Shown here one piece after another: positions 1-57,776 of a stretch of 64,000 nucleotides of DNA. The number at the start of each line of letters is the position of its first letter. Position 1 is the first letter of the stretch. The notes beneath the pieces were generated by a model. It searched no databases. It was not told where the DNA came from and saw nothing but the letters and a program-made list of their open reading frames with translations. Location of the stretch: the NCBI RefSeq assembly GCF_003704095.1, contig NW_020845558.1:744001-808000 (forward strand). The letters run 5' to 3'. A program made the translations under genes and the position numbers. The DNA comes from Pocillopora damicornis. Taxonomy: Eukaryota.

Positions 1-2379
1 CAGCGATCTAGTTTCAATACCTCATTGTTATTGGAGCTCTAAAAGGGATGTCGACCGTTATGAAAGACTCCACGACAAAAGTTGCATTATTTAGCGACAA
101 GAAACCTGAACCAACAAGAGGTATCTCTTCAATTAACAGGTGGCAAGTTACACTAAGTTTTTCAACAATTACCCTCGCTATTTTCAGTTGGGTGTCCAGA
201 TTCTTTTGAAAGATAACCTGATCTTCGTACATCAGTGGTCGAGTTACTACAAGAGATGATCTCAGTATAAAAGCGGGCTTTCGTTCTACGAGCTTTATTC
301 TGCTGTTGATAATACAGTGCTGGTATCTGGATCAATAGTAGTGTTCGCAAGATACGTATAAACAATGCAAATTGAATCTTAAAGGCAAGAATAACTTGGT
401 GAGTAGGGACATCACTACACATCTTAATCTGGGATGGGGTATAAGTACGAAGTGTGATACAGATCGGTTAAATGTAAGGGTGCAGGACATACAAAGAAAC
501 ACCGTCAAGGTATTAAGAAACTCAGATTAAAATGGATGTTAGGGTTCAGTCGATGATTGTTAATAGAAAACAATGGTAACTGTATCTCTGAAGAACATGG
601 AGTTGGGACTGTGGGAATCGAGAGCCTGGAAGTCCTAGCCACCATCCAGATACATGTATGGACTCTAAGGGTCACAAACCTCCAGCGCCAGCCACACATT
701 CACAGACACCCAATCATAAAGAAGGCAACCTTACTTCCTTACTCCGCTGTGAGGTTGTGTTGTAGTGGTGTTGAAGTTTTTACCCTTCTTCTTGGCCAGA
801 TCAAGTGGAGGGATAGGTGCTGCTGAAAAAGGGAAAGGTGAGGACTCAAGGTCTTAGTGAAAGTCACTTCTTCTTCAGTAACAAGAGAGAGCAAACGATT
901 CTTACAAGTTGAACTTTCGTTGTACTCTAAACAAACTCTGGGATAATTTGTTTCCTTGGGTAAAATTTCCACACAGCACTATGCTATTGTAAAACAGATC
1001 TGCTTTCCCAATGGCACTGTATTGTTTTTGTCATTGTTTTCTCAATCCAAGAACTGAATGCAAAATGTAGTATGGGGCTGTGCATAAATTTTACTATTCC
1101 TTGTACTGTTTGGTTATGGCAGGTGTTTTTCTCTCCACTTGGAGCTCTTGGGGTCACATGCATGGAACACACATTGGCTCTTAGATTTGGGTTGTAGCTA
1201 CGGAAATGCTCACTGATAGTTTCTTCACATAATAATAAGAGGAATTTAATAAGAAGAAGCAGGCAGCTGTTTAGTCAATACATATCTTGACAAACACTAC
1301 ATGTGAGTACTATTTACAACCTTACATAATTTATTCTTCACCCTTCTACCAAGAGACATGAAAAGGACTTGGTGGAACCTTTAGCTGCCCAATTTCAATC
1401 TCTACATGTCTATAAGGTCACATAATTACATTTTGATTTTTCAAATCAATAGCTCTCATTAAGATCAAATTAGTGTAGCACTGAATGATAAAGCACACAT
1501 TAATAGTGTATATACATGTTTATGACCTGCATCTGAGTGTATAAAATGTGTCTCTGCATCATAACACAGACAAAACAATGACAAAGGGTCCTCTTAGCTC
1601 TGTAGTACCTTCCATTAGACACTGTCTACATGCAATATTTAGCAAACAAACCATTAAGTTACAATTTATACAATTCATACCCTAGAATACACTGAATCCT
1701 AGTTACTACCATGTAAAATTCAGGAGGATATTCAAATTTATGTATTTAATTATATATTCATAATAATATATTATGATGCCTAACAAAAGACATAGAAAGA
1801 GAGTAACAAAACATTCAGCTTACTAATTCAAGTCTCTGAGTGTCCTCATAGTCTTGGTCTCATTATTAAATTTTGAATTGACAACTCCACTGCTTCCTTT
1901 GACTTTATAATAGTGTAAACCAGCCAGTTGCTAGCAATACATGATGAACTAGACTTTGACTGGCCTACATGACACAGATATTGGCTCTATAAGTGGACAA
2001 TAGAGTTAAAATAAAATGTGGCATTTTGTCCTTAAAAGAACCTCCTTTAAATAATGATAACCAGAATTTTCTGGTGCCATGAAGGAGACTGAAACTCACA
2101 GCTAACTAGTCCAAACTGACTTGCAATGTATAATTGTATATGCTTCAACTACTTCCCTGGATTGTTAGTTCAAGCCTGTCTTGCTCTGTAATCCTTAAGG
2201 GAAGGATGATGTGACTTTGTTTTCCATTAAATGGTTCTACTGGAAAAGGAAAAATTTGCTGATACAATTAGAAAATAATCAGCTTCAGTGAATCTAAAGT
2301 CATATCACTGCACCTCAATACACAGCTTAATATGTTACAGTTGAGCAAAGATACATGTATTTCAAAATTCCTCAATTAA

Positions 2380-30307: not shown

Positions 30308-31291
30308 ATGAAAATGGTCTCTGCAGAGGTAAAGATACCTTTAAGCATTTTGGCAGTCCTTGTTATGTTCACTAATGGCGTAGTTTGCTTTCTGGTGTGT
30401 ATCAACAAAAATTTAAGGACATACACCAATGGATTTATCGTTTCATTGGCGGTGTCTGATATCTTGGTAGGGGTCACACTATTTCTTCAGTACGCCCTAT
30501 CAGTAAAAGAAGCAGTGACCCTAAATATCTTGTACACCACAGCTTTGGTTGGAAGTGTGGCAAATTTGAGCGCTGTAACTTTCGACCGATACGTCGCTTG
30601 TATGAGGCCCTTCAATTACGCGAACACTATCGTCAAGTCTTTTTTCCCAATCGTGGCATTTTGTTGGATCATGGCTGTAGTCTGCGCAGTTCTTCCACTC
30701 TCTTGGACTGACAGCGATGTAGCAGGCTTGGCTCTGAGAATTTATCAGATTTGTATTCTCCTTCTGGGTATTGCGATACCTTATGTCTGCATCTTTATCA
30801 GCTACGTGCGAATTTCCCGCCAAGTTCGTAAAATTGTAACGAGAGAGAGAAAACTGGTCAATTCCGTAAAGGCATGTCCCAGAGCAGATTTAAGAGCAAG
30901 GAGGGTGTCCTCGGAGGCAAAGGTTACTAAAGTGTTCGTTGTAATAGCCGTAATGTTTGTTTTGAGCTGGTTGCCAATTATATGGACTACTTTGGTCTAC
31001 GCACTCGGGAAGCCGCAGCTATTGCCCAAGCACGTTGCCCTACTCTCGCCATTCACGCTAGCCTTTGGCTCTATTGTAAATCCTTTACTGTATTCATTCA
31101 TGAAGCCAGACTTTAAGTCTGTATTTAGGAAACTTTTTCATTTGAACAAAGTGCCGCAGCGGTCGCGGAGGGAACAGCATCTTTCACGGAATAACACGAG
31201 TGAATTTCCTGCCCCAAGCGCTGTAACAACTCCTTCCACATTAAACTTGCAGTCAGTGGCGCTAATAAATATTTCACAGATCTCTAGTTAA
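30308..31291 (+). CDS. intronless class A (rhodopsin-like) GPCR, orphan, 327 aa
   Basis: Seven hydrophobic segments; TM1 Asn (TNG), LAVSD, DRY, TM4 Trp, TM5 Pro, SWLP, NPLLY, helix 8 FKSVF. Confidence 0.95.
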   Translation: MKMVSAEVKIPLSILAVLVMFTNGVVCFLVCINKNLRTYTNGFIVSLAVSDILVGVTLFLQYALSVKEAVTLNILYTTALVGSVANLSAVTFDRYVACMRPFNYANTIVKSFFPIVAFCWIMAVVCAVLPLSWTDSDVAGLALRIYQICILLLGIAIPYVCIFISYVRISRQVRKIVTRERKLVNSVKACPRADLRARRVSSEAKVTKVFVVIAVMFVLSWLPIIWTTLVYALGKPQLLPKHVALLSPFTLAFGSIVNPLLYSFMKPDFKSVFRKLFHLNKVPQRSRREQHLSRNNTSEFPAPSAVTTPSTLNLQSVALINISQISS

Positions 31292-40773: not shown

Positions 40774-40965
40774 AATAATAACAGTGTTGCATGAACCGAT
40801 GAAAGTAGAGTTATTACCTAGGTTTGTTATGCTTTTCATCAACATAGACAGGCACAGTTGTGCCTCGAGATGTAACGTAACCCTACCCTTTCCCCTTTCA
40901 CAGCTAGCATGCTCTTAATTTCATTTATTCTCTTCATAGAATTTTCTCCATCAGACTAGGTAGCC

Positions 40966-43900
40966 ATGGCAGAAAACATGGTTTCCATGATTGTGCTTGT
41001 TTTCGTGGTCAGTTGTTCCGTGTGTTTGCTGAATGGTAAGAACCTTGTATTTATGATCATCTTGTCTTGTAATGACATTCTAGCTGCTGAGTGGGAAATT
41101 CCTGATCTGCTTGTATGTAATTCTAAGGGATTTATAGTCATTTACTTCTCACTATTCCAGGAGAAGGAATACGCCACGAGGATGCAGTACCTATCAACAG
41201 GTTTGTCGTGTGTATTTTAACATCTTAAAAATGCTTGCGGTGTACGTTGTGCGTTTTAGAATGCTAAGATGTTTTACACACAACTGTATGCGATCACAGT
41301 GATCACTAAGGGTCCTGTGACTTTCGGTCATGCTAAATTGCAGGCTGCAGAGCGTGCAGACCGCGCTTTGTTCGCTGGAGAATTTGGACTGCTATAGCTC
41401 GCGAGACACTGACAAACTGATTTCGATAAGTATTATGCGGTTTTTTTCAGCCTGAGAAAAAAAAATTATGTTTTCTCGCTTATAAAATTTTATTTTACAC
41501 CTAGGTGGACGTTAAATGAAAGTTAAAAAACTTTTTCTGGGAACTGGTTTTTAACCGAATGATAATTGGTAATACACAATAAACGAGCGCCATTTGGAAT
41601 GCCGCTTGCGTGCCTTGTTTCTTCTGACCTGTAATCCAACTAGTACAGCTCAAGTCTGGGCCAGATTAAAGCACTTCTACTGTGTAAAACAAACCTAAAC
41701 GCTTCCGTTGCAGCTCGAAAGAGAAGAAAAAACCTTCGATCACTTTCTGGAGAAACATTCTGCAAGTGTGGGAGAGCCACTGATGTGTGTCAGATGCAAA
41801 CTTCAAATACTGTTTGTTTCTTGATTAAATAATACACTTACGAACTAAAGAAAAGCTGAAGAGGAGTGAAATTAGAATTTGTTGTTTATTTTCCATCTGA
41901 TGGGAACTTATCGCAGCCGACGTCGACCTTTCAACCGTACCAAATTACTCCGTCTGACTCCAAGCTCTAAACAGCGATAAATGCAAACCAACAGTGACAC
42001 ATTTCGTTCTATGTTTTCGATTTTTGGTAAAATGAAAAACATACCAATGAAACCCCAGTGCAGTCTGCCGGGTACCTGCGTATCACAAGTAATTAGTAGG
42101 ACAGTGTGCAAGTGAGGCCAAATCCAGGTTTCGATTTTCTATTTATGTTTATAACGACACTGTCGAAAGTATAAGCCTGCGCTGCATGACCCCCTGCAGT
42201 ATTTCTCTACAAACATGAAAGCGAGGCAACCGAGAAAACAAACCGACAAATTGGTTTGCCCTTCGTAGGTCTCTGCTTTCTACTTCTTGTGGTGCAAAGC
42301 TTGGTTGAAAATAGTGAAGAATTGCTTTCCTTCTGGAACGCTCAAAGTACTTACGAAAACACACGCTATTCGTGGTAGGCCCACACTAAAAGATGTCGAA
42401 CGTTAGTTTCCAAACGGGTCGTTCTGCGAACCAAAAAAATGCCATAACACTGCCAAAATTACTTTAAGCAATGCTAAACAAACTTAAAGCAATGCCAAAG
42501 ACAATGTCAAAAACAACGCCAAAGATACTCAAATGAACTCAAAACTACTCGAGCACGCTCGAACAAAGGAACAAATACCGACTGTTTAATGAGAAGGGAC
42601 TTCACTGTGGATTACTCTGAGGAGACAGTCAGACAAAGGTCTTCGTTTTCGTAACTACCAAAATATTCCGGGCAACATGGACGCCATATTGGAATCTTTC
42701 AAGGTGACATTGAATGCGTTAGCAGAATTAAGACGCCTTGGACTTATATCAGTGACAGTAAGGATTAGTTTCTTACTAATTGTATGGTTATTTGCCAATT
42801 TTTGTATATATCGTAAAGACCTGTGTATAAACACCACCTTTTAGCTTAAGTTTTGGGCCTAAAATTGTGGGTGCAGCTTGTACATGAGACCTTTGCTTTC
42901 ACAGAGAGTAAACTGGCTTGTCTAGACTTCTCTTGTTAACCCTTTAACTCCCATGTGTGACCAAGACAGAATTTCTCCTTACAATATCATTACAATATCA
43001 ACCATATAAGTGATGAGAATAAAGAAAAATATCAATTTGGGGATAATTAGTTGATCCAATACTAAATTCTCTGAATTAACATTATACGAATTGTATGATT
43101 GATAGTAAGGAGGATTACAAATTTGATCTGGTAGTCAAAAGGTTAAATGACTGCATGGTTACCATGCAAATGTTTTGCATTGTTCTCCTGCACTTTATTT
43201 TTGTTCAAATTCCATCGTTTTCATTGGGCTGTGGGCTTTAACAATGAAGACAACTGTTGTCAGTCAAAGGGAATGGGGAAATCAATTAAAGGAAGCTTTT
43301 AAAAGGTATTTCCAGAGTTGATTAACTTCTTAATGTCTCTTCAAATACAAAACATTAGATTTTGTCAAGTTTATTGTGAATGTCTGCGAACAAACAACCA
43401 ACTTTTTTTACAAGAGTGCCTTTTTGGTGTCTTCTATTTTTTTTTTCCAAAATCATGCTTGAAAGTTGGAGGGGTAGCTTATACACAAGTTTTTACAGCA
43501 GTTTTGCAGATAGATAATATGTTTCAAACTTTCCATTTCTATCTGATAACAAAGGCCACATTTGCATCCTGCAAGCTTGAATTCTGGGAAATATGCTAAT
43601 GCACACTGCTCAAAGCTCTTGCCAAATGGAGTCTCTTGGACTTCTTTATTGTTGTTTAAGTAATTGTTTGCATTTCAAAGGTCCCTATGCAAAGTTACTC
43701 TAAGTTATCCTGAGTAAATGCTTGTAGGCATCTAGTTTTCATTTCACACACACTGTGCATGCATTGAGATTAGGTTACTCAAAATAACAATAAAAAATTT
43801 TGTCATGTGTTGTCCAAAAATTGGAAACAGTTCTAATATTATCTAAAGAGTAATCATGTAAAATCACAGTTTTAAAAAAAGGAAAACAAAACTGCACAGT

Positions 43901-46900
43901 CTGCATCATCTGCAGTCTGCATTTTATCATGACTGTGTAACTTTCACCTTCTCCTCAAACTGTCACCCTGATGCAAAATTGAGTTAATGCTACTGTGTCC
44001 AGCTTTGTGATTTTGGAGTGGGAAACTTCAGAGAAACAAAGACATACTTTTCTTATTTGAATTGGATATTTGTGTGTTGTGTGTGTTTGACCATTAACTG
44101 AAGCATACTGCCGAGCCAGCTTGTACTTGCTTTTTCATCCTATTAGTCGTGTTACTATCTAAACTGAATTCACTTTGTCATGGTCATATTTGCTTCAGGG
44201 CTAGGCGTTCTGTACCAATCAAGTATGACATCTACACTCTGGACTACTTTATCGAGCTTGTGGAGAAGATTGAAAGACACACCATTACAAGTGGAGATTC
44301 TATAAACAAGGTTGTTAACTATGTTCGTCTCCTCGGTTACAACACTGATCTGTGGAACATAGTGTGTGGCAAAGCAGATCCACTACCAGACCCTATTTTG
44401 AACTCAGAAGAGAGACGTGTCCTGAATAACATGGTTGTAAACAGTTACAGCGATCAATCCAGCAGGCGAGAGGGTGTGGTGTTAACATCAGACCGGGAAA
44501 CCATTTCCATGGGTCGAGTCTTACTAGGCATTTGTGCAGGGCTGAATCGCGATAAAAGCCTCTCACTCAGAGCATGGACCTCAGGAGCTCCACTGCGTGT
44601 TGATAATTTGTTTACAGCAACAATTGCATACAGCCTTGGACGAAGTGCACTGTATAAAGCAAATGGTGACACTTCAGATTTATTTGGTCCATCTGGATCG
44701 TGGAGCCCAAAAACTGAATGCCCTGCTTCATACTCCTTAACTAACACAGCTTCTAAGGCTACTGATGCTGAATTACTGGGAGATGTTGATGGGTTCCTCC
44801 TAGGGCATGGAATCCCCCAATGGAAGAAGAAAGGTGTTAGGCTTGGTCAGTTGCTGAGAATGTACTACGGATCAGGTATCTGGAAATTAGAGTTAACAGT
44901 GCTAAGAGCAGAATGGGTATACATGCAAAATCTGCTTGCTGTTACTAGTTATTTGCTGCTGGCTGCAAAGAGAAATCATTTGAGAGAACTTATTTGATAG
45001 CTGAGTCCACTGATCCATATTCTGGTTCTTGTAAGTTTATAGATGGTATTGCTTCTGAATGGCAGAAGACTAGACTTAGTGCTCGACTGATGTTGAGTGT
45101 CCAGTTTTTTCCACTCCATGATACCCTCTGTTCTTATTATGTTTGTTTGATGACATATCTCCAGTTCCTTAGTGCTATAAAGCTTAGACAGAAAGATTCT
45201 TGTAGAGGAATGATGATTAAAAATTGGACAGGCAGGCACATACAAATAATAGATAGCCAGACAAATTCACACTAGTAGTCTGAGGAAATCACACAGACTC
45301 AAAAATGTTTTGCAGAACTTATCTTCACACGATACAATTTTTATTGCATTATTTCTGTAGCGACAAATTTGAGTTGCCAAGGCAAGAATGGGGACAGGAG
45401 TCTACAGACCTTACCCTTAATTATGTCCAGGAGTTAAACAATGAATCTGCCAGACTTGTGGCTTTGAACAGGAGTCACCATATGCTAATCTTACAGTCTT
45501 GTTAACTTGATACATTCTCTGCACATGGTGTACCAATTTGCAGTTATTGAATTCTTCCAATTAATTTCTTCTGAAAACAGGCATCCTTTATGATACTTCG
45601 TATGCAAGGTGCCGGAGAAACTCTAAATTTTCAAGTATCGTCAATAAAGATAATCTTCTGAGTGAGATAAACGGATTTGCCTCCGCCTACTATGACAGAA
45701 ACTCAGCTCAGCTTACAAGGGTAAATCAAGGCAGAATCCTCTCTCTGTCCAAGGACATAAATGAAAAATTCTTCCCCCACCTGGGTGAGTATCTGTCTTT
45801 GTATTTGTTACCAGCTTCATTGGAAACGCATTGAAAAGACTACTTTTGTGTGATTTTTTTTTCCAATTTTTTATTTCTGATTGCTTTGGTAATTCTGCTC
45901 CCTAAAGAGTAACTACGTGTTTTTAGCTGTATTATAGGCCATACAGTGCTGAAAGTCAAAAAACAAAGAGGTTGCTAATAATGAATTTGTCTGCTCTGCA
46001 GGTAATATTGCAGGAAATTCCAAGTGCAGTATTGACAAAGACAGCGCAGGTCAGAACTTACAAGTTTGTTTATGAGTGTATTCTCATTGCTTTCGCATAA
46101 ACTCGTATTACATGCGTCAACTCTTCTGTATTTTTTTACTTCCAGATTGTGAAATTCCAGCTAATGTTGTTTTTGTCATGGACGAGTCAGGAAGTGTTGG
46201 TTTTGACAACCATTTGAAGGAGAAGGAATTCATCGGGTTAGTGGTAATAATAACACCGCTTATGTAATGCTGCTTTATGGCGCTACTGCGGTATAACAAC
46301 AAAGCAAAAAGAAACCTCCAAACTTTGTGCGCGTGGATGGGTATATTAACATGAATCTTCTTTCTTGCTTGCTAAATGAAATGCATTCATGAATTTGGTA
46401 GATATAGTGAGGCAAATTTGTTTGAGCATTCAATTATTTTTTTATGCCTTGTACGTCGTTTTCTCAGAGTAATACTCCAAGACCACTCCCACATGGTGTC
46501 ACGAGTTGAATGCATATTGTCAGTAAAAGCAAAACAAGCGAATCGTTTTGTTTGTATTACCATTATTTAATCATCTAAGTGCTATCATTAGAATCATTAT
46601 TATCATCACCTTCAACCTACAATCACTGTTAGTCATTTTCAGTTCACAATGATGATATTTTGAAATCTTTTTAAGTATCTACTGTGCTAAAATCTAAGAC
46701 TGTTCGTCGGTATTAGGTAGTTTTTAGCAATGGAAAGGAATTGAAAGGCATGACTGGTATTGTGATTTTTGTGAAAACCTTCCACTGTAGAAAGCTTATT
46801 ATTTTTCAGAGAGATCATTAAAACATTTGACATTTCTCCGCGTCAAACTCGCGTGGCTATTGTTGAGTATTCCAGTACAGCCAGTGTAGCAGTAGCTTTA

Positions 46901-49900
46901 GACAACTATGGCTCCAAAACGCGACTGATGTGCGCAGTAGATGACATCTCGTATTCTGGTATGTTTTTCTTTGATTTTAAATCTAACTTCATTTGCATCA
47001 ACATACATCACTTAAAATTCTCTTATGATACTTAACTTACAAAATATTATTTACCAAAAATTAATAAAACATGATGTGAAGTGAATTCTTGTAATTTCGT
47101 GGAAAAGGTTGTGGTTATTCATCGTGGTGAATAACAATAAAAAGCTAAGTTTTTCGTTTGTCTCACAATGTAGTCACGTGTGATCTACATCACACGTGAC
47201 TACATCGTGAGACAAACGAAAAACTTAGCTTTTTATTGAATTCTTGTAATTTTGTTGATACATACAGTTTCACAAGGTCTTAGAGTTCCAAAAGGCTCGA
47301 GTTCTTGAAAACAGCTTGTTCACGGTTTAAATATTGTAGAGTGTCATAAAAAAAGTGTCATTTTGAATGAGTGTGAGTTGTGTCCCATCCTCCTAAGCCA
47401 TTATAAATCTTAATTTGGGTTTATCAACTGATATTATCAGGTAAATCAGCCTTCGTAAAGAGTTTCTTAAGCTGACGTTTCGAACGTCAGCACTTCGTTA
47501 TTTGCTGTGATTAAGGGCTAACGCTCGAAAAGTCAGCTTTAAAAACTTTTTACGGTGGCTGGTTCACTTTATCAGCTCAGTTTGTTGAACCAAATTATAT
47601 TGTAATACCCCATACAGACGCAGCACCATAGAAAGAGGTTACCCAGCAACGCTACGTCTTCTTGACCCTTGATTTAGCTATATCTTTGTGCCTGTAACTT
47701 ACCAAAGAGTTGAGTAATCCCCAATAGCGAATTGTTCGATTGCAATTAGCATATCAAGATTGTTCTTCACCCTTGAACATTTTTGTTTCTAACCAAACGA
47801 ATTTTGATTTACACAAGTATAACGTAGTTTTTTCGGTCTGAATAGCTGCGAGTTTCAAGTAAATCAACCCCGGAGAACTTGAACTATGTTTTGGAAATCA
47901 TGCACAAAGCATCTCGAAAATCCTATGAATCTATTACATAATGTGCTGACCATCTAAAGGGATCTTAAATGGAAAAAATAAAATTTCCTTGTTTTCAAAG
48001 CAATAGCTTATCACATCATTAAACCTGTTGATTGCATTGTATTCTCTTGTCCATTCCACAGATTAGGTTTAAAATAAGCTAAATTTTACGAAGACATAAG
48101 AGGGCTCTGAAGTAAAAAACAAATTTTTCTTCCATAGGCGGCTCCACGCAGACTGCAGTGGCTCTAGAGACTGTTCACTACTATGTATTACGACCCGCTT
48201 TGGACAATCCAGTGAGCGACACAGAAACAGTACAGGTACGACCTTAGTACCTATTACGAATGGATTATTCAACATACAACTTTGCAGAGATCAAATAATC
48301 TATGAATGGTGGTGAAGATGGGGGGGGGGGGGGGGGGGGGGGGAAGGCGCATAGCTAGGATTGAGGGGGCCTATCATCAGTCACCATATATCAATCTATA
48401 AGCTAAGCCAACTTTTCTGTGTGACATAGATCGTCATTGTACTCACAGACGGCTATTCTGACGATCGCTACGCCTTGGAGAACGCGGCGAAGGATTTGAA
48501 GAAAGACATAAAGGGTAATGTTCACTTATATTTAGCAGACAGATAAAACATTTTTGGCGCCCTCGAGAACCGAACGAAGTTCACTCATCATTTGATTTTA
48601 TCTGTAATCTATGAGCAGAAGGAATTGTGCTGCTTAATAGGCAGACAGTTATGTTGAGGCCTAGGGGATATAAAGCTTTGTTCTAGAATGCCAAGCGTTG
48701 CAACGGAAACGAGTAAAGATGCGCAAGAACAAAGTTTCTTCACTCCCAGGGACTGAAAATGGTCGCCGCCCTACTCTCCTATCAGCCAACAGAACTAACA
48801 ACTCGTACCTCTAAAGCTAAGTATGTGTGGTGTATCATTGACGGAGATTAAACAACTTCCTTCCGCCCAATTAAATGGCATAGTTCTGTACACAAATTTT
48901 CTTGCATGGCTGTATGTAGAAATACAGTGATACAACCTTATTTGGTAAATCATAGACTTCAGGTGTAGCCCATGCCTTGTCTGTGTATAATGAATTTCAC
49001 TCTGAAACTTAAACATTTCAGACCTGACAATGATTTCTGTTGGGGTCGCAAATTACGATCTTTTCGAGCTGCGTTTGATTGCTACTGACGAGAAGCACCA
49101 TGTTTTCACTGCTGAAAACTTCGACAAACTTCCTGAGTTGGTCACGTCGCTGAGAACAAGGGCTTGTAATGGTGAGTTTCGAATTCTGTGATTGACATGT
49201 AACTTTACCCTATAATACCCATACATTATCCACCTAACCGGTAACGAGAATTCTCAAACTTATTAGGTAGAGATTGTTATCTTGTTCCAACACTAAATTC
49301 TCGTTACAGGGAAATGTGTAGCAGATAGAAGGGAGAATTAACAATCAGTTCATTGATGTTAAAGGGTTAACTTAACCCGTTGCCAGCTTCCTGATAATTT
49401 AATTTCGTAGAGTATGTAGCCTTAGAATTATGGATTTAACATGACATTTAATTAAAAAATAGTTTGGGCTTTTCCTTCTCGCGAGCAGGGAGTTTCTAAT
49501 TTGACCTTTGTGAAGATATGCTGCCGAATCATCAGGCCTCAAATATATCTTTGACCCAAGCATGAAGAAGAGTCCTTGATAGTGCAATTGAAAGTGTCCT
49601 TATATCATCCGCTATAGACTCCTCACAAAGTTGAAATTTGCTCTTTAAGCGTGAAGATCATATTCGGTAATTAATATTGACATGGTAACTCCTGAACGAG
49701 CGAAAGGAGCTTTTTCACGTTTACAAATCTTAAACATTTTCTAAAGTAATTAAAAGGCTGATCATTTCCACTCCGAGTTGATTTTCTCTAACCCAACTAA
49801 TCCTCCTTCATTTCTCCATTTTGGGATTTATGTCACATTTCTGTATCACTTAACCAATGTTCTGTGGTTTTCCGTCACACTGAGCAACTATCCTGTCCTG

Positions 49901-52900
49901 AATTGCTTTGTGGACATATCAATATCTTCTCTTTGCAGCACCTATTAACATGGGCTTGAACTTCACTGAGTCAAAAGACTCTACAGAAGTCGTAGCGTTC
50001 GTTTCTCCAAATAAGGCACGATTCTTTACTTTGCCTGCGGAGCTTTTTTTCGGGGTCGAAGAAATTTTTATTGACGTAAGTATGTTTCTAGTTTTTTCGT
50101 TTTCTGACAATACGTCGCTGAGTCATAATAATCCATTTTTTTAAACCTGAGTTCTTACTACTAGAGGAGATGTCGAGCGTATGCGTCGATCATTTCGAAG
50201 CATCCACTTCCCCCCTTCCCCTCTTCCCCGGGCAACTCTCCATGGATGTAAACTTTTGAAGATTAGTTCGTTCAATCCCTCACCCTCTCCCCTGGGGCTA
50301 AACCTGTGTTCCAGTGCTCCACCTAAGTTATGGACTTGATCGTCAATTTTTTCGGAAAAATGACCGTGACATTATTTTAGAACTTTTGTTGTGAGCCATC
50401 TGCTCGCGAAAGTAAACTGTTTACCCGTAAACACCTCTATATTAAAAAATAAACCACTTGTATTCCGCTCGAAAGACTTGAAAGTTCCAATTCAAATCCC
50501 CCACCCCACCTCACCCCACCCAGGCAAGGTTCCGTACCGACACCAGGGCTCAGACGACAAAATCAAATGCCCGTGGGCTGCCCAGTGGGGAAATGTGGAA
50601 CCTTCAAATTGATCGACACGTTACAAGACTTTGGTATTTGCTGCAGGTTGTACCACAGTATGGCACTGTGACTGTGTATGCATCAAGGATAACAGATACT
50701 CCGGGTCCAGACAATTACACTCTCAAAATTGGACCGGCAGGTAACCTTTTTAATCTCACATTACAGGGTGTGAAAGACGCCAATGCGACTAAATTTTTCA
50801 CTTTGGCACACCAAATCCTGAAAATTAGTTGCCAAATTGGCTAATAGAATGTTTCATCATAACCTTACCAAGAGATAAAGTGAATTTAAAAGATTTGCAA
50901 AGATAAATCCGCGGCAAACTTCCTCGTTCAGTTTGTTTCCAAAACGAAGCATGTGCATCTCGATCGATAACTAGACGCCATCATAGATTTAGGTGAGCTT
51001 GAACGTTGTATATCATCCATCCTAGTGTCCACTTTGTAGCACATTAAAGATCTTTACCCTAACTTAATTTTGGAGAGTCTATTTAGAACGCTGAGTACCG
51101 CTTTCATACATTTTTATCTTTGATTCTGAGTGCCTTTTCCAAAGAAATATCATTTTGGATCAATAATGAGCAAGCATGGTGACTTGAGTTGAATCTGATC
51201 TTCATGTTGATGACGCTCACTTCAAAAGCTTTTCGCCACGAAACGCCTATCTAGAAATAGTTTTGCATTTAGCTATGTTTTGCATTTTTAAGGAGAAGGA
51301 GAAGAGATGCAGCTGCAGTTTACAAACCTTTGTGCCGGTAGGAACATTCACCGATCGGTTACTTGTAACTGTTAATGACGATCAAATTCATGATCTTTAA
51401 CTTGGCCAGGAACCCTTTCAAATACAAAAATGTTACTTTAAGAAGCCAATTTACGTAGAGTACCGTTTACTATTCTAGAAACATGTCTGTCCCGATGACT
51501 TTGTTGAAACAAAACCTCCTGTTTTGCAGAGTGATAAACCAGGAAAATCTAATCAGCAAAACAACGGCCACTGCCCTCCAACCTTATACTTTTCTGAGCA
51601 AGCCACGGGCTTATGTGCTGAATTTCCGATGTGTTGGGGGAAACCAATACCTCCACTAATATGATGATTAACCGTGTACATGAACTTAAAGTTCATTTGC
51701 GTTTACCTCGAATTTCAGGTTACAATTCCTCTGAAACTTGTCCTCCAATCAACATCGGAATATACGGAGAATCGTCTTCACTTTCCTGCTCAGGTTTTCA
51801 AAATTTTCAAATGAGTTTTGCATTTGCTTAATCCGCAAGTTACAGCAAGGGCGTAACAAGGGAAGGAGGGTCTAGGGTTGCTCGTGACCCCACTTTGTAA
51901 ACCTTTTTCGTCACATTGAGAAAAACTCAGCGTGGAGGTCGACAAGACAGCCTGTTGAGTACCCTCTGTTTGACATAGTGTAAGACCCCTCCCCAACCCT
52001 AACCCTAACACTCCCTTGAAAGATCCTGGCTACGCCCCTGTACAGTGGCATTCGTCGAGTAGTTAGCGATCTAAACCGAGGCAAGTGAGAAAAAATCCAG
52101 TGAGTAACAGGGTGGAGCGCTTGAACCGGAGGGGGGGGGACAACTGGAGACCAGGCTAGGTCGTTGGTCAAGACTTATTTGAATGGTTTCGCCCGGGAGA
52201 AATTGCAATTCCGCTAGTAGTTTTTTGTTCCAGATGCTAGAATAAGCCTCAACATCAATGGAACATTATTTTGACCGCCTAAACCTTTGAGTAGGACCTG
52301 TGTTGTTGCCTTTTTTGCGAGATCAATCGTCTCCTTTACATTTTTTACCTAGAGCGAGACTGCAATCTCCCAAATCAAATCAAATTCAAGATAAGAAGAG
52401 GTAAGTTCTTGTGTTTTTTTTGGGGGGGGGGAGGGGGGAGGTACTGTTTTAGCCACCCAAGATTGTAAAATTCTGGGGAAATGTTGCAGCTCAAGTTGGT
52501 TCTCTAAATATCGTGAGACATGCCAACAAACATGCTTGAATAGGGCACTGAAATACCAGGGGGTCCTAGCTACCCCTAATCCCTCAGCCCCCAATGTTGG
52601 AGTGTTCTATCCAGTAAATTCGGTGTGCATACAAGTCGACGGTTTTTTCTTTTTCTATTGAAAACTATCAAAGAAGTATGAAATACCCACAATTGTCCCT
52701 CTTGCAGTTATAAGAGCAAACTTTACCATTGCCATAAACTGTAATCTTAGGTCAGACAATGAATGATGAGTTTGCCATTTTCGTTTTTTTTTTTTGACAA
52801 GTAACGGAATTTTTTATTTGCAACAGGAACACCTAAAAAAAACAGAGGAGGCATCACGACTACAGACCTGTTTTTCCGTCATTTTCTTCTCACAGCTTCG

Positions 52901-52924
52901 ATCTTGGTTTTGAATCTTTTGTAA
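40966..52924 (+). CDS. secreted, probably GPI-anchored protein: PGLYRP2-N-terminal-like domain + VWA domain + C-terminal beta-rich domain, 702 aa, 16 exons
   Basis: Exons 40966-41035, 41161-41200, 44199-44875, 45581-45784, 46002-46049, 46146-46236, 46810-46958, 48138-48235, 48430-48514, 49022-49171, 49939-50075, 50647-50740, 51293-51337, 51719-51793, 52353-52400, 52827-52924 splice into one open frame (2109 nt). Signal peptide, furin site RARR, MIDAS VFVMDESGS...GGSTQT...IVLTDG, hydrophobic tail FLLTASILVLNLL*. The last three exons are the least certain. Confidence 0.85.
42811..43498. mobile_element. Tc1/mariner-like MITE nested in the Mutator-like element
   Basis: TA|TCGTAAAGACCTGTGTATAA ... 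TTATACACAAGTTTTTACAG degenerate TIRs. Confidence 0.6.
42940..43142. mobile_element. piggyBac-like MITE, nested (third level)
   Basis: TTAA|CCCTTTAACTCCC ... AGTCAAAAGG|TTAA; same family as 2380-2580. Confidence 0.8.
47135..47238. repeat. near-perfect hairpin (50-bp arms, 4-nt loop)
   Basis: 47135-47184 pairs with 47189-47238 at 49 of 50 positions; loop CTAC. Confidence 0.95.
47411..47632. mobile_element. Penelope-like element terminal repeats in inverted arrangement, with degenerate hammerhead cores
   Basis: Forward copy GTGATTAAGGGCTAACGCTCGAAAAGTCAGC...TTTACGGTGG...GACGCAGCACCA and an opposing copy TAACGAAGTGCTGACGTTCGAAACGTCAGC on the minus strand. Confidence 0.6.
49203..49366. mobile_element. 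degenerate TTAA-flanked MITE
   Basis: Right end GTTAAAGGG|TTAA; degenerate left end after TTAA. Confidence 0.45.
51846..52040. mobile_element. hAT-like MITE
   Basis: CAAGGGCGTAACAAGG ... CCTGGCTACGCCCCTG imperfect TIRs. Confidence 0.55.
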
Positions 52925-56438: not shown

Positions 56439-57776
56439 ATGAAAATAGTTGTTGTGCCTATTTACCAACTAATACTTTTGTGGAAATTATCACTAACGAT
56501 ACATGGACTGAAAAAGGACGAGCCGAAGATATCACATGGAATATCTCAAGAGAGTAAACGTTCTCTCCAGCCACAGTCAATGACTAGATGTGGACGATCA
56601 ACTGATAGCAACCCCCCCACAACTCCATGGACAAGACATGGGAAGTCTTTAAGACCACAGTCAGTAACAAGATTTAGACGATCAGCTGACACCAAACCAA
56701 TTCGTGGAGGTAACAATTATATCAGTTCAATAATACCACAGTCAATAGCAAGATTTGGGGGGTTCGCAGATAAAAATCCTATCAGTCAATGGAAAAGACA
56801 TGGAAGGTCTATAAGACCACAGTCAGTAACAAAATTTGGACGATCAGCTGACACCAAACCTATTCATGGAGGTGACAGTTATACCAGGTCAATAATACCT
56901 CAGTCAATAACAAGATTTGGAAGGTCCGCAGATAAAAATCCTATCAGTCAATGGACAAGAGATGGAAGGTCTATCAGATCACAATCAACAAAAAGATTTG
57001 GACTATCAGCTGGCACCAAAACTATTCATGGAGAAACCAAATATATCAGGTCTATAAGACCACAGTCAATAACGAGATTTGGACGATCAGCNNNNNNNNN
57101 NNNNNNNNNNNNNNNNNNNNNNNNNNNNNNNNNNNNNNNNNNNNNNNNNNNNNNNNNNNNNNNNNNNNNNNNNNNNNNNNNNNNNNNNNNNGGAGGGAAC
57201 AAATATATCAGGTCTATAAGACCACAGTCAATAACAAGATTTGGAGAATGTGCTGGCACCAAACCTATTGATGGAGGGAACAAATATATCAGGTCTATAA
57301 CACCACAGTCAACGACAAGACTTGGACGATCAGCTGACACCAAACCTATTGATGGAGGGAACAAATATATCAGGTCTCTAAGATCACAGTCAATAACAAG
57401 ATTTGGAAGGTTCGCAGATAAAAATCCCATCAGTCAATGGACAAGAGATGGAGGGTCTATCAGATCACAGTCAACAGAAAGATTTGGACTATCAACTGGC
57501 ACTAAACCTATTCATGGAGGGAACAAGTATATCAGGTCTATAAGACCACAGTCAATAACGAGATTTGGACGATCAGCTGGCACCAAACCTATTCCTGGAG
57601 GGAACAAATATATCAGGTCTATAAGACCACAGTCAATAACGAGATTTGGACTATCAAACGTATTTATGGAGGGAGCAAATATATTAGGTCTAAAAGACAA
57701 AAATCAGTGGAAAGATTTGGACTATCAGCTGGCACCAAACCTACACATGGAGGGAACAAATATATCAGGTCTATAA
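56439..57776 (+). CDS. neuropeptide preprohormone, QSITRFamide (QITRFamide family) type; spans gap 57092-57191
   Basis: Signal MKIVVVPIYQLILLWKLSLTIHG; 27-aa (81-nt) tandem units ending in PQSITRF-G-R (Gly amide donor plus basic cleavage site). 13 units are visible in frame; four more lie beyond a frameshift, up to about 57965. Confidence 0.88.
   Translation: MKIVVVPIYQLILLWKLSLTIHGLKKDEPKISHGISQESKRSLQPQSMTRCGRSTDSNPPTTPWTRHGKSLRPQSVTRFRRSADTKPIRGGNNYISSIIPQSIARFGGFADKNPISQWKRHGRSIRPQSVTKFGRSADTKPIHGGDSYTRSIIPQSITRFGRSADKNPISQWTRDGRSIRSQSTKRFGLSAGTKTIHGETKYIRSIRPQSITRFGRSXXXXXXXXXXXXXXXXXXXXXXXXXXXXXXXXXXGGNKYIRSIRPQSITRFGECAGTKPIDGGNKYIRSITPQSTTRLGRSADTKPIDGGNKYIRSLRSQSITRFGRFADKNPISQWTRDGGSIRSQSTERFGLSTGTKPIHGGNKYIRSIRPQSITRFGRSAGTKPIPGGNKYIRSIRPQSITRFGLSNVFMEGANILGLKDKNQWKDLDYQLAPNLHMEGTNISGL
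57092..57191. other. assembly gap (100 N) inside the tandem peptide repeat
   Basis: Run of N. Confidence 1.

Follow-up and report, generated by a model that had tools for sequence, protein, structure and literature searches.

Does a single coral surface protein join a relative of the N-terminal region of vertebrate PGLYRP2 to a VWA domain, and what would such a protein do? The question is raised by a gene of Pocillopora damicornis on the + strand at positions 40966-52924 of the analysed window, a stretch of DNA of 64,000 nucleotides. To our knowledge, no function has been demonstrated for the N-terminal half of human PGLYRP2.

The PGLYRP2-type N-domain was named Met-TelC and placed in the Lipocone superfamily, with a bacterial toxin origin, by Burroughs et al. 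(eLife 2025, PMC12419801). The same work describes the architecture seen in cnidarians and arthropods, Met-TelC + vWA + Ig + TM. The original prediction had treated the domain as an orphan without a name, and this part of it does not stand: the coral gene belongs, as a well-documented member, to a known family, whose architecture was published in 2025. The published cnidarian/arthropod form is a secreted protein with a reconfigured active site, in which an N-terminal Met-TelC domain is followed by vWA, by a further domain of beta type and by a hydrophobic segment at the C-terminus. The coral protein is the same in kind and agrees in the active site as well.

Gene model and transcript evidence

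Joining of the 16 exons (Table 1) gave an open frame of 702 codons ending, as had been predicted, at 52924, with GT-AG at each intron. The encoded protein of 702 aa comprises, in order, a putative signal peptide, RARR, a domain of ~290 aa (exons 3-4), VWA, a C-terminal domain of ~135 aa and a GPI-signal-like tail. For exon 1, an in-frame stop was found 9 nt upstream, and the N-terminus is hydrophobic. The peptide strings cited in the original prediction were all present on the + strand, each where it had been reported. The segment encoded by exon 4 is contiguous with that of exon 3 in homologs. No Rfam families were found within 40-54 kb.

Expression was evident from RNA contigs, which contained the GT..AG joints from 41035/41161 to 46049/46146 in 3-4 runs belonging to 3 studies. 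One spliced mRNA therefore carries exons 1-6 and with them the first VWA exon; separate genes for the domain and VWA exons, an outcome that had been named as fatal to the prediction, were not what the contigs revealed over this stretch of the gene. For exons 7-16, placement relied on splice phase and on colinearity with the uninterrupted transcript-derived ORFs P0211 and P0212 of relatives. The full-length model was 68% identical to P0211. In the full-length relatives P0044 and P0211, VWA was present and Amidase_2 absent. A wrong fusion of a neighbouring Met-TelC gene and a VWA gene into one model could appeal to the span of the RNA check (exons 1-6 only), but is highly improbable, since single RNA contigs from 4 runs hold exons 1-6 with GT..AG joints, which refutes it for these exons, in relatives both domains occur together, either in an uninterrupted transcript ORF or in an annotated protein (P0044, P0211-P0214), and 16/16 exons are in phase.

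Table 1. Exons of the coral gene with encoded features and the evidence used for placement.
Exon	Coordinates	Strand	Features and evidence
1	40966..41035	+	Start codon, signal peptide (MAENMVSMIVLVFVVSCSVCLLNG); joint 41035/41161 in RNA contigs of 4 runs
2	41161..41200	+	Short propeptide (EGIRHEDAVPIN) and first two bases of the Arg opening RARR; both joints (41035/41161, 41200/44199) in 4 runs
3	44199..44875	+	RARR, then main part of Met-TelC domain, aa 37-263; full RNA contig coverage
4	45581..45784	+	Met-TelC C-terminal helical extension, aa 263-331; conserved Arg in RCRRNSKF; RNA joint 44875/45581
5	46002..46049	+	16-residue linker (NIAGNSKCSIDKDSA); RNA joints 45784/46002, 46049/46146
6	46146..46236	+	VWA start, MIDAS DxSxS (DESGS, aa 359-363); Pfam VWA profile 1-28; 5' RNA joint; donor by phase
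7	46810..46958	+	VWA; Pfam VWA profile 23-75, E 5.8e-09; tblastn of P0211; phase
8	48138..48235	+	VWA, MIDAS Thr motif GGSTQT; tblastn of P0211, P0212; phase
9	48430..48514	+	VWA, MIDAS Asp (IVIVLTDG); Pfam VWA profile 106-130; tblastn; phase
10	49022..49171	+	VWA end; Pfam VWA profile 131-172; tblastn; phase
11	49939..50075	+	Start of ~135-aa C-terminal domain; N-glycosylation sequon; tblastn 77% identity to P0211; phase
12	50647..50740	+	C-terminal domain; tblastn; phase
13	51293..51337	+	C-terminal domain; acceptor 51296 equally in frame; tblastn; phase
14	51719..51793	+	C-terminal domain; tblastn; phase
15	52353..52400	+	Conserved C..CNLPNQIKF motif, common to arthropod proteins; tblastn; phase
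16	52827..52924	+	Small residues NRGG, spacer, terminal hydrophobic stretch (LFFRHFLLTASILVLNLL), stop codon; GPI-signal-like tail; phase

Relatives of the Met-TelC domain in animals and bacteria

For comparison with PGLYRP2, a cnidarian-only HMM was searched against 1.8 billion proteins and matched PGLYRP2 of vertebrates with E values of 1e-16 to 1e-40. By animal, the E values were 2.9e-17 (bird), 2.2e-22 (lizard), 1.3e-16 (dog) and 4.8e-40 (sturgeon). The vertebrate matches were annotated as PGLYRP2 or N-acetylmuramoyl-L-alanine amidase, covered nearly the whole cnidarian profile and had Amidase_2 C-terminal to the match. Alignment of the cnidarian and vertebrate profiles with hhalign gave a probability of 100% and E 1.8e-41 over 276 columns, and BLASTP was likewise significant (exon 3 against lizard PGLYRP2, E 1e-19; further BLASTP, E 8e-10). 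Homology to the PGLYRP2 N-terminal region over the entire domain length is thus strongly supported by profile and pairwise comparison. The predicted pairing of such a domain with VWA is confirmed, the VWA exons lying in one gene with exons 3-4. Database searches were run with single exons of the gene or with database homologs. Searches of exon 3 against Pfam, NCBIfam and PDB sequences gave no match, and against the ESM Atlas sub-threshold unrelated rows only.

Amidase_2 (PF01510) was not matched in exon-level translations of the coral gene, which is therefore not a PGRP; its kinship is with the PGLYRP2 N-terminal domain only. Both proteins are secreted, and ~290 N-terminal residues of vertebrate PGLYRP2 are homologous to the coral domain throughout. 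PGLYRP2 differs by its C-terminal Amidase_2 and by lacking VWA, the coral-type C-terminal domain and the membrane tail; mammalian PGLYRP2 contains an insert of ~30 residues. Arthropod proteins of domain + VWA type, which had been mentioned in the original prediction, were found in Artemia ('VWFA domain-containing protein'), flies, bees and ticks. Owing to its occurrence in cnidarians and bilaterians, the domain is older than the split between them, in line with the age proposed for it.

For fold comparison, the AF2 model used was that of P0045 (pLDDT 92.3; not the coral's own protein), a contiguous homolog that shares 42% identity with exon 3. Among 48,161 chains, TelC (5ukh_A) was the only one above Z 5, with Z 8.3, 206 residues aligned and rmsd 5.7; the next-best chain reached Z 4.2. 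Foldseek with the same model placed 5ukh at rank 1 with E 0.38, which is not significant. When exon 3 was modelled by itself from a shallow cnidarian alignment, AF2 gave a poor result (pLDDT 66; Foldseek 5ukh rank 11, E 6.2), and two sequence profiles searched against the PDB did not reach TelC. From the homolog model, the Met-TelC domain is predicted to have a TelC-like fold, consisting of a helical Lipocone core, cap and C-terminal helical extension.

TelC of Streptococcus intermedius (PDB 5ukh), whose fold the homolog model shares, is an Esx/T7SS-delivered lipid II phosphatase toxin. An invariant Asp after H4 and the C-terminal helical extension are common to TelC and the coral domain (described in PMC12419801). 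TelC, however, is a catalytically active toxin domain ending an LXG protein, whereas the coral protein is a eukaryotic surface protein without the His position. Bacterial relatives were also found linked to DUF4157/eCIS_core, as in P0082 of Longimicrobium (HEU0300080.1), which combines this partner with a Met-TelC-type domain (HMM E 2.5e-23; 30% identity, BLASTP E 2e-18). These toxins share GVV..G..A.G.V..G..AG..R, DNLYA.T, ATDAE..GD.DG and YY with the coral domain. They differ in their polymorphic-toxin architectures, in keeping the His and the full acidic set, and in that their H3 and H4 are not separated by the GPxGxW..CP insert. The coral domain descends from bacterial TelC-type toxin domains.

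In animals, Met-TelC is joined to three partners in separate lineages: VWA, Amidase_2 (vertebrates) and Tae4 (annelid). The annelid architecture, 2x Met-TelC + Tae4 amidase, was found in the annotated model P0236 only and is unmentioned in PMC12419801. Tae4 as a single prokaryote-style ORF was absent among the protein matches scanned with phmmer/hmmsearch. The bacterial descent of the domain had been missed in the original prediction.

Surface features and pocket residues

PF00092 was matched colinearly by the VWA pieces (Table 1). The MIDAS is complete, as had been claimed, with DESGS at 359, GGSTQT at 427 and LTDG at 464; metal binding is predicted from these motifs. The expected furin-type RARR site before the Met-TelC domain was located at aa 37-40, formed across the exon 2/3 junction, and a site of this type is kept in cnidarian and annelid relatives (NRVKR/S, SRSKR/S, SRYRR/Q, SRQRR/S). 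The C-terminal domain from exon 11 onward, named Ig in PMC12419801, lies in a region homologous to arthropod proteins.

The coral C-terminus consists of a hydrophobic stretch preceded by small residues and followed by zero residues. In 14/14 cnidarian and arthropod proteins examined, 0-8 residues lie beyond the terminal hydrophobic stretch. The coral tail is moderately hydrophobic (best 19-residue KD 1.54) with Arg and His within. By its pattern of small residues, polar spacer and hydrophobic end with no cytoplasmic tail, which recurs in the 14 relatives, it looks more like a GPI signal than a TM helix; a GPI-signal-like tail had been proposed.

For analysis of the pocket, nine reference positions were used, defined as those that 16-18 of the 18 bacterial-like relatives have in common. 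His occupies the putative catalytic position in 17/18 of these relatives. In the coral, this His is replaced by Arg143, the H3-end Asp by Ser182 and the near-universal ExG Glu by Arg127; R154, D172, N173, E228, D232 and D234 are kept (6/9 positions), including the H4 acidic residues. D234, six residues after E228, was invariant in 61/61 aligned sequences, and Arg275 (RxxxF) of the C-terminal extension, the putative partner of this Asp, is conserved across groups. R, D, N and D234 are retained in 100% of cnidarian sequences, and all nine bacterial positions in 3/23 cnidarian ORFs. Cnidarians thereby stand much closer to the bacterial constellation than vertebrates or arthropods do. The PGLYRP2 pocket is more degraded, with His changed to Pro, E228 to Phe/Leu and D232 to Ala/Gly. 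Judged by its residues, the coral active site appears reconfigured or inactive relative to prokaryotic relatives. The Arg in place of His might support catalysis of another kind.

Possible function of the coral protein and of the family

The coral protein is probably a secreted, surface-tethered Met-TelC/vWA member that senses a bacterial envelope lipid; an immune or receptor role is what we infer from its parts. The signal peptide would direct it into the secretory pathway, and a proprotein convertase cut at RARR/S would free the Met-TelC domain at its N-terminus. The mature protein would be held on the outer cell face by the C-terminal GPI-type signal. There, the Met-TelC domain, a soluble Lipocone domain, would most likely bind, not cleave, a bacterial polyprenyl-pyrophosphate-linked cell-wall intermediate or related envelope lipid. 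Binding is preferred to cleavage because the putative catalytic His, the acidic residue at Ser182 and the Glu at Arg127 are lost and the rest of the pocket is kept. A proposed PAMP receptor function of Met-TelC for polyisoprenoid-pyrophosphate intermediates has been published (PMC12419801). The MIDAS-bearing VWA domain may mediate a metal-dependent protein contact that serves adhesion, clustering or hand-over to an effector.

It is quite unlikely that the domain is still enzymatic and that the protein acts as a surface-bound antibacterial effector, cleaving lipid II or a related polyprenyl-pyrophosphate intermediate like TelC and merely positioned by its VWA domain. The high retention of bacterial residues in cnidarians, the 3/23 complete sets and the coral's own 6/9 with its H4 acidic residues speak for such an enzyme. 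The three coral replacements (His to Arg, H3-end Asp to Ser, ExG Glu to Arg) and the published prediction that most Met-TelC members are inactive (PMC12419801) argue against it.

A matrix or cell-adhesion protein that senses no microbes, in which VWA is the working part and Met-TelC a degenerate scaffold or a binder of endogenous lipid, is likewise unlikely. It would suit the complete MIDAS motifs and the retention of the whole architecture from cnidarians to insects, with a full-length identity of 23%, as for a housekeeping adhesion molecule; the gene is also single-copy in the coral's own genome, without immune-type expansion. However, independent fusions join Met-TelC to peptidoglycan amidases of two unrelated families (vertebrate Amidase_2, annelid Tae4), and its bacterial relatives lie within toxin proteins, so that bacterial envelope chemistry is indicated.

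For the reef coral, the results amount to confirmation and detail, not discovery: a transcript-supported gene model (RNA for exons 1-6 of the 16) and a list of surviving pocket residues were gained. Together with the furin-type site of cnidarians and the GPI-signal form of the tail, these go beyond PMC12419801, the one paper found to mention the family; no experiments on invertebrate Met-TelC proteins are known. The coral, arthropod and annelid relatives are simple systems in which the published idea of lipid-linked cell-wall-intermediate recognition can be probed. Tentatively, Met-TelC may serve as a targeting module for lipid II/polyprenyl-PP intermediates that was repeatedly coupled to cell-wall hydrolases (Amidase_2; annelid Tae4/Dae4), perhaps still catalytic in some cnidarians, given the 3/23 that keep all nine positions. 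If so, an ancient antibacterial enzyme would survive in the coral VWA form as a tethered sensor, and in PGLYRP2, as its unexplained N-terminal half, as a substrate-guiding relic.

Gene model and transcript evidence

A single multi-exon gene was found on the + strand at 40966-52924 of the window. The open frame 44149-44997 encloses exon 3, which is present in public RNA runs of several studies, and all peptide strings quoted in the original prediction were located in exons 3-4. RNA contigs from 4 runs of 3 studies were compared with window positions 40900-46300 and gave GT..AG joints at 41035/41161, 41200/44199, 44875/45581, 45784/46002 and 46049/46146. Individual contigs of 1.1-1.3 kb span the exon 1-6 joints, and exons 1-6 therefore form one spliced mRNA. 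The VWA exons begin with exon 6, so an origin of exon 3 and the VWA exons from different genes fails for this checked part.

Later exons were placed by tblastn colinearity with P0211 and P0212 (uninterrupted 704-707-aa ORFs on transcript-size contigs of related cnidarians) and with Actinia LOC116287609, and splice sites were picked to preserve phase. The predicted 16-exon structure was thereby confirmed by contig joints from 4 runs for exons 1-6 and derived from homolog colinearity and phase for exons 7-16. The 16 exons comprise 2109 nt (702 codons), all introns are GT-AG, and no internal stops occur in the joined frame. Database and fold queries were single exons or database homologs; the joined protein was compared by script. 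Its identity to P0211 is 68% across aa 8-692; against the Actinia protein, full-length identity is 46%. The 234-Mb assembly contains a single copy of the gene.

Contigs from two RNA runs (X5, X14) join an alternative 5' exon (window 42274-42757) to 44199 by GT..AG. Because no in-frame start leading into a signal peptide could be identified for this exon, it may represent a non-productive isoform or the product of an alternative promoter. Intron 2 carries an interspersed repeat of ~165 bp (window 42936-43100; at least 2,778 candidate genomic copies, 93-96% identity) that is very abundant in RNA contigs; it probably represents a young element of SINE- or MITE-like type. At a distance of 10 kb upstream, the same strand carries an intronless ORF for a rhodopsin-family GPCR (window 30308-31288, +; Pfam 7tm_1, E 4.8e-30). 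In the Actinostola gene model P0049, 7tm_1 is merged with part of Met-TelC, a hint that the neighbourhood is conserved. The repetitive ORF at window 56439-57773 (+) is long (445 aa); its Pfam rows were spurious and sub-threshold only.

Homology to the PGLYRP2 N-terminal region and fold comparison

Exon 3 gave no match in family libraries, PDB sequences or ESM Atlas, and a word search, owing to its length window, matched only exon-size ORFs of corals and sea anemones. For a cnidarian-only profile, 23 of these ORFs were aligned (alignment A1). When 1.84 billion proteins were searched exhaustively with this profile as an HMM, 460 reached E <= 1e-3, including vertebrate amidases and arthropod proteins (see table); fly, bee and tick proteins were also matched. 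By pairwise BLASTP, exon 3 matched the lizard protein with E 1e-19 (29% over 177 residues) and the dog protein with E 8e-10, the latter alignment containing a 30-residue mammalian insert. Using hhalign, the cnidarian profile and a 15-sequence vertebrate profile were aligned with a probability of 100% (E 1.8e-41) over 276 columns, from directly after the vertebrate signal peptide to shortly before the amidase. At the level of sequence comparison, the HMM, BLASTP and hhalign results establish the predicted homology of the coral domain to the PGLYRP2 N-terminal region.

Features of the coral gene and protein, profile matches and annelid loci (E values from the cnidarian profile search)
Feature	Position	Strand	Details
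Exon 3	window 44199-44875	+	AG acceptor before 44199, GT donor after 44875
Exon 4	window 45581-45784	+	
Met-TelC domain	aa 41-331		
Linker exon	after Met-TelC		16 residues
VWA domain			exon pieces colinear with Pfam PF00092 profile 1-28, 23-75, 106-130, 131-172
P0044, Nematostella LOC5510794	VWA 338-516		E 2.9e-84
P0061, sturgeon protein	Amidase_2 297-425		E 4.8e-40
P0076, Artemia 'VWFA domain-containing protein'			E 5e-25
P0085, lizard N-acetylmuramoyl-L-alanine amidase			E 2.2e-22
P0131, bird PGRP2 amidase	profile 13-223 on aa 26-227; Amidase_2 326-453		E 2.9e-17
P0143, dog peptidoglycan recognition protein 2			E 1.3e-16
P0236, tubeworm protein	Met-TelC 42-258, Met-TelC 350-567, Tae4 679-784		signal peptide, RQRR
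Tandem Met-TelC and Tae4, adjacent ORFs	L002:4001-6911	same	
Tandem Met-TelC and Tae4, adjacent ORFs	L003:5001-8356	same	
Tandem Met-TelC and Tae4, adjacent ORFs	L004:5001-8359	same	
Tandem Met-TelC and Tae4, adjacent ORFs	L005:5001-7463	same	

The domain had been taken for an unnamed orphan, which does not hold: it is named and described by Burroughs et al. (eLife 2025, PMC12419801; bioRxiv January 2025), who define the Lipocone superfamily. The discovery is thus already published, with a fuller evolutionary explanation in which transfer from bacteria ahead of the cnidarian divergence is inferred. A full-text search found no further paper on the Met-TelC family. The cnidarian profile directly matched bacterial proteins, among them one from Longimicrobium in which a Met-TelC-type domain comes after an eCIS_core/DUF4157 domain (HMM E 2.5e-23; BLASTP E 2e-18, 30% identity). 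DUF4157 is among the delivery modules given for prok-TelC (PMC12419801).

For structure prediction, exon 3 alone was modelled poorly from a shallow alignment (pLDDT 66). The surrogate P0045, a 300-aa ORF in which the counterparts of exons 3 and 4 are contiguous (42% and 35% identical to these exons, respectively), was modelled with an alignment of 62 cnidarian, vertebrate, arthropod-like and bacterial-like sequences (pLDDT 92.3, pTM 0.92). Foldseek placed the bacterial toxin TelC (5ukh) at rank 1 of 350,542 chains with a non-significant E of 0.38. In an alignment against all of 48,161 chains, no chain except 5ukh_A exceeded Z 5 (Z 8.3 over 206 residues, rmsd 5.7), with model residues 1-291 on 5ukh_A residues 243-550; the second-best chain reached Z 4.2, and human PSS1, another Lipocone member, Z 3.1. 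TelC in PDB sequences was out of reach for sequence profiles of the domain, in agreement with the weak profile-profile link (probability 77) in the data of PMC12419801.

Protein anatomy and annelid relatives

The N-terminus consists of MAENMVSMIVLVFVVSCSVCLLNG, EGIRHEDAVPIN and RARR-SVPIK, in the order hydrophobic signal-like start, 12-residue propeptide and furin-type R-x-R-R site, the last being created across the exon 2/3 junction. Furin-type sites directly precede Met-TelC also in related cnidarians (NRVKR-S, SRSKR-S, SRYRR-Q) and in an annelid relative (SRQRR-S); none was present at this position in the arthropod and vertebrate proteins compared. All three MIDAS elements of the VWA domain were found: DESGS (359), GGSTQT (427) and LTDG (464). 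The VWA is followed by a region of ~135 residues that has paired cysteines and contains three N-glycosylation sequons, and the protein ends in ...RRGTPKKNRGGITTTDLFFRHFLLTASILVLNLL. The terminal hydrophobic segment was compared in 14 cnidarian and arthropod proteins; in all 14 it is preceded by small residues and followed by 0-8 residues. As a sequence pattern, this tail has the form of a GPI-attachment signal, unlike a type I anchor, which would extend into the cytoplasm, and a putative GPI signal would fit slightly better than the 'TM helix' of PMC12419801. The furin-type site, the full MIDAS and the GPI-signal-like tail had all been predicted.

The arthropod proteins with this domain and a VWA that the original prediction mentions were likewise recovered, e.g. 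in Artemia. A cnidarian VWA-to-C-terminus profile matched arthropod proteins nearly end to end (e.g. positions 2-350, E 1e-13 to 1e-18), and the joined model aligned with one arthropod protein over aa 40-699. Thus, the whole protein, beyond its first domain, is conserved between cnidarians and arthropods.

Several strong matches (P0046-P0055) contain two tandem Met-TelC domains. A Tae4-family ORF (PF14113) lies 0.2-1 kb downstream of tandem Met-TelC on the same strand in four of four assemblies; for two of these, no ATG precedes the conserved Tae4 domain start, so that it behaves like an internal exon. PF14113 is the T6SS amidase effector or Dae4-type domain. In Lamellibrachia satsuma, P0236 is annotated as a single protein of 1029 aa. 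The catalytic Cys is missing in the majority of these Tae4 domains. In cnidarians, Dae4 is known to act as an antibacterial enzyme (PMC8713801). The putative annelid fusion is a third Met-TelC architecture; with it, Met-TelC would have been coupled to a cell-wall amidase for a second time, independently. None of the terms Tae4, Dae, Annelida and Lamellibrachia appears in PMC12419801 or its accessible supplements.

Pocket residues and proposed function

Nine positions were compared: Glu of ExG, His of GHV, Arg of AG..R, Asp and Asn of DNL, Asp of GDLG, Glu of TDAE and both Asp of GDxDG. This set is kept in 16-18 of 18 bacterial-like relatives. The second Asp of GDxDG (D234 in coral) is invariant in 61 of 61 aligned sequences and, six residues after E228, fits the TelC-specific Asp of PMC12419801. 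Vertebrate and arthropod proteins have lost the His and most of them the first Asp; vertebrates additionally lost the Glu. Cnidarian sequences retain most positions, and 3 of 23 retain all nine (P0036, P0039, P0041; alignments A1 and A2), so some cnidarian members may still be enzymes, unlike vertebrate and arthropod ones.

A PAMP-receptor role for polyisoprenoid-pyrophosphate intermediates has been proposed for the family, most members of which are predicted to be inactive (PMC12419801). For the coral protein, the reading judged reasonably probable is that it would undergo furin processing and be tethered through GPI or some other tail, that its Met-TelC pocket would bind a bacterial lipid-linked envelope intermediate without cleavage, and that the MIDAS VWA domain would make a metal-dependent protein contact. 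That it serves adhesion only, with no microbial role, appears unlikely. Retained catalysis is slightly less likely again: the coral state is R-R-R-D-N-S-E-D-D, with the ExG Glu, the His and the H3-end Asp replaced. A model merged from separate genes is very improbable and is refuted for exons 1-6. The biology of the family is putative, and the value of the finding lies in this and in small additions of confirmation and detail.
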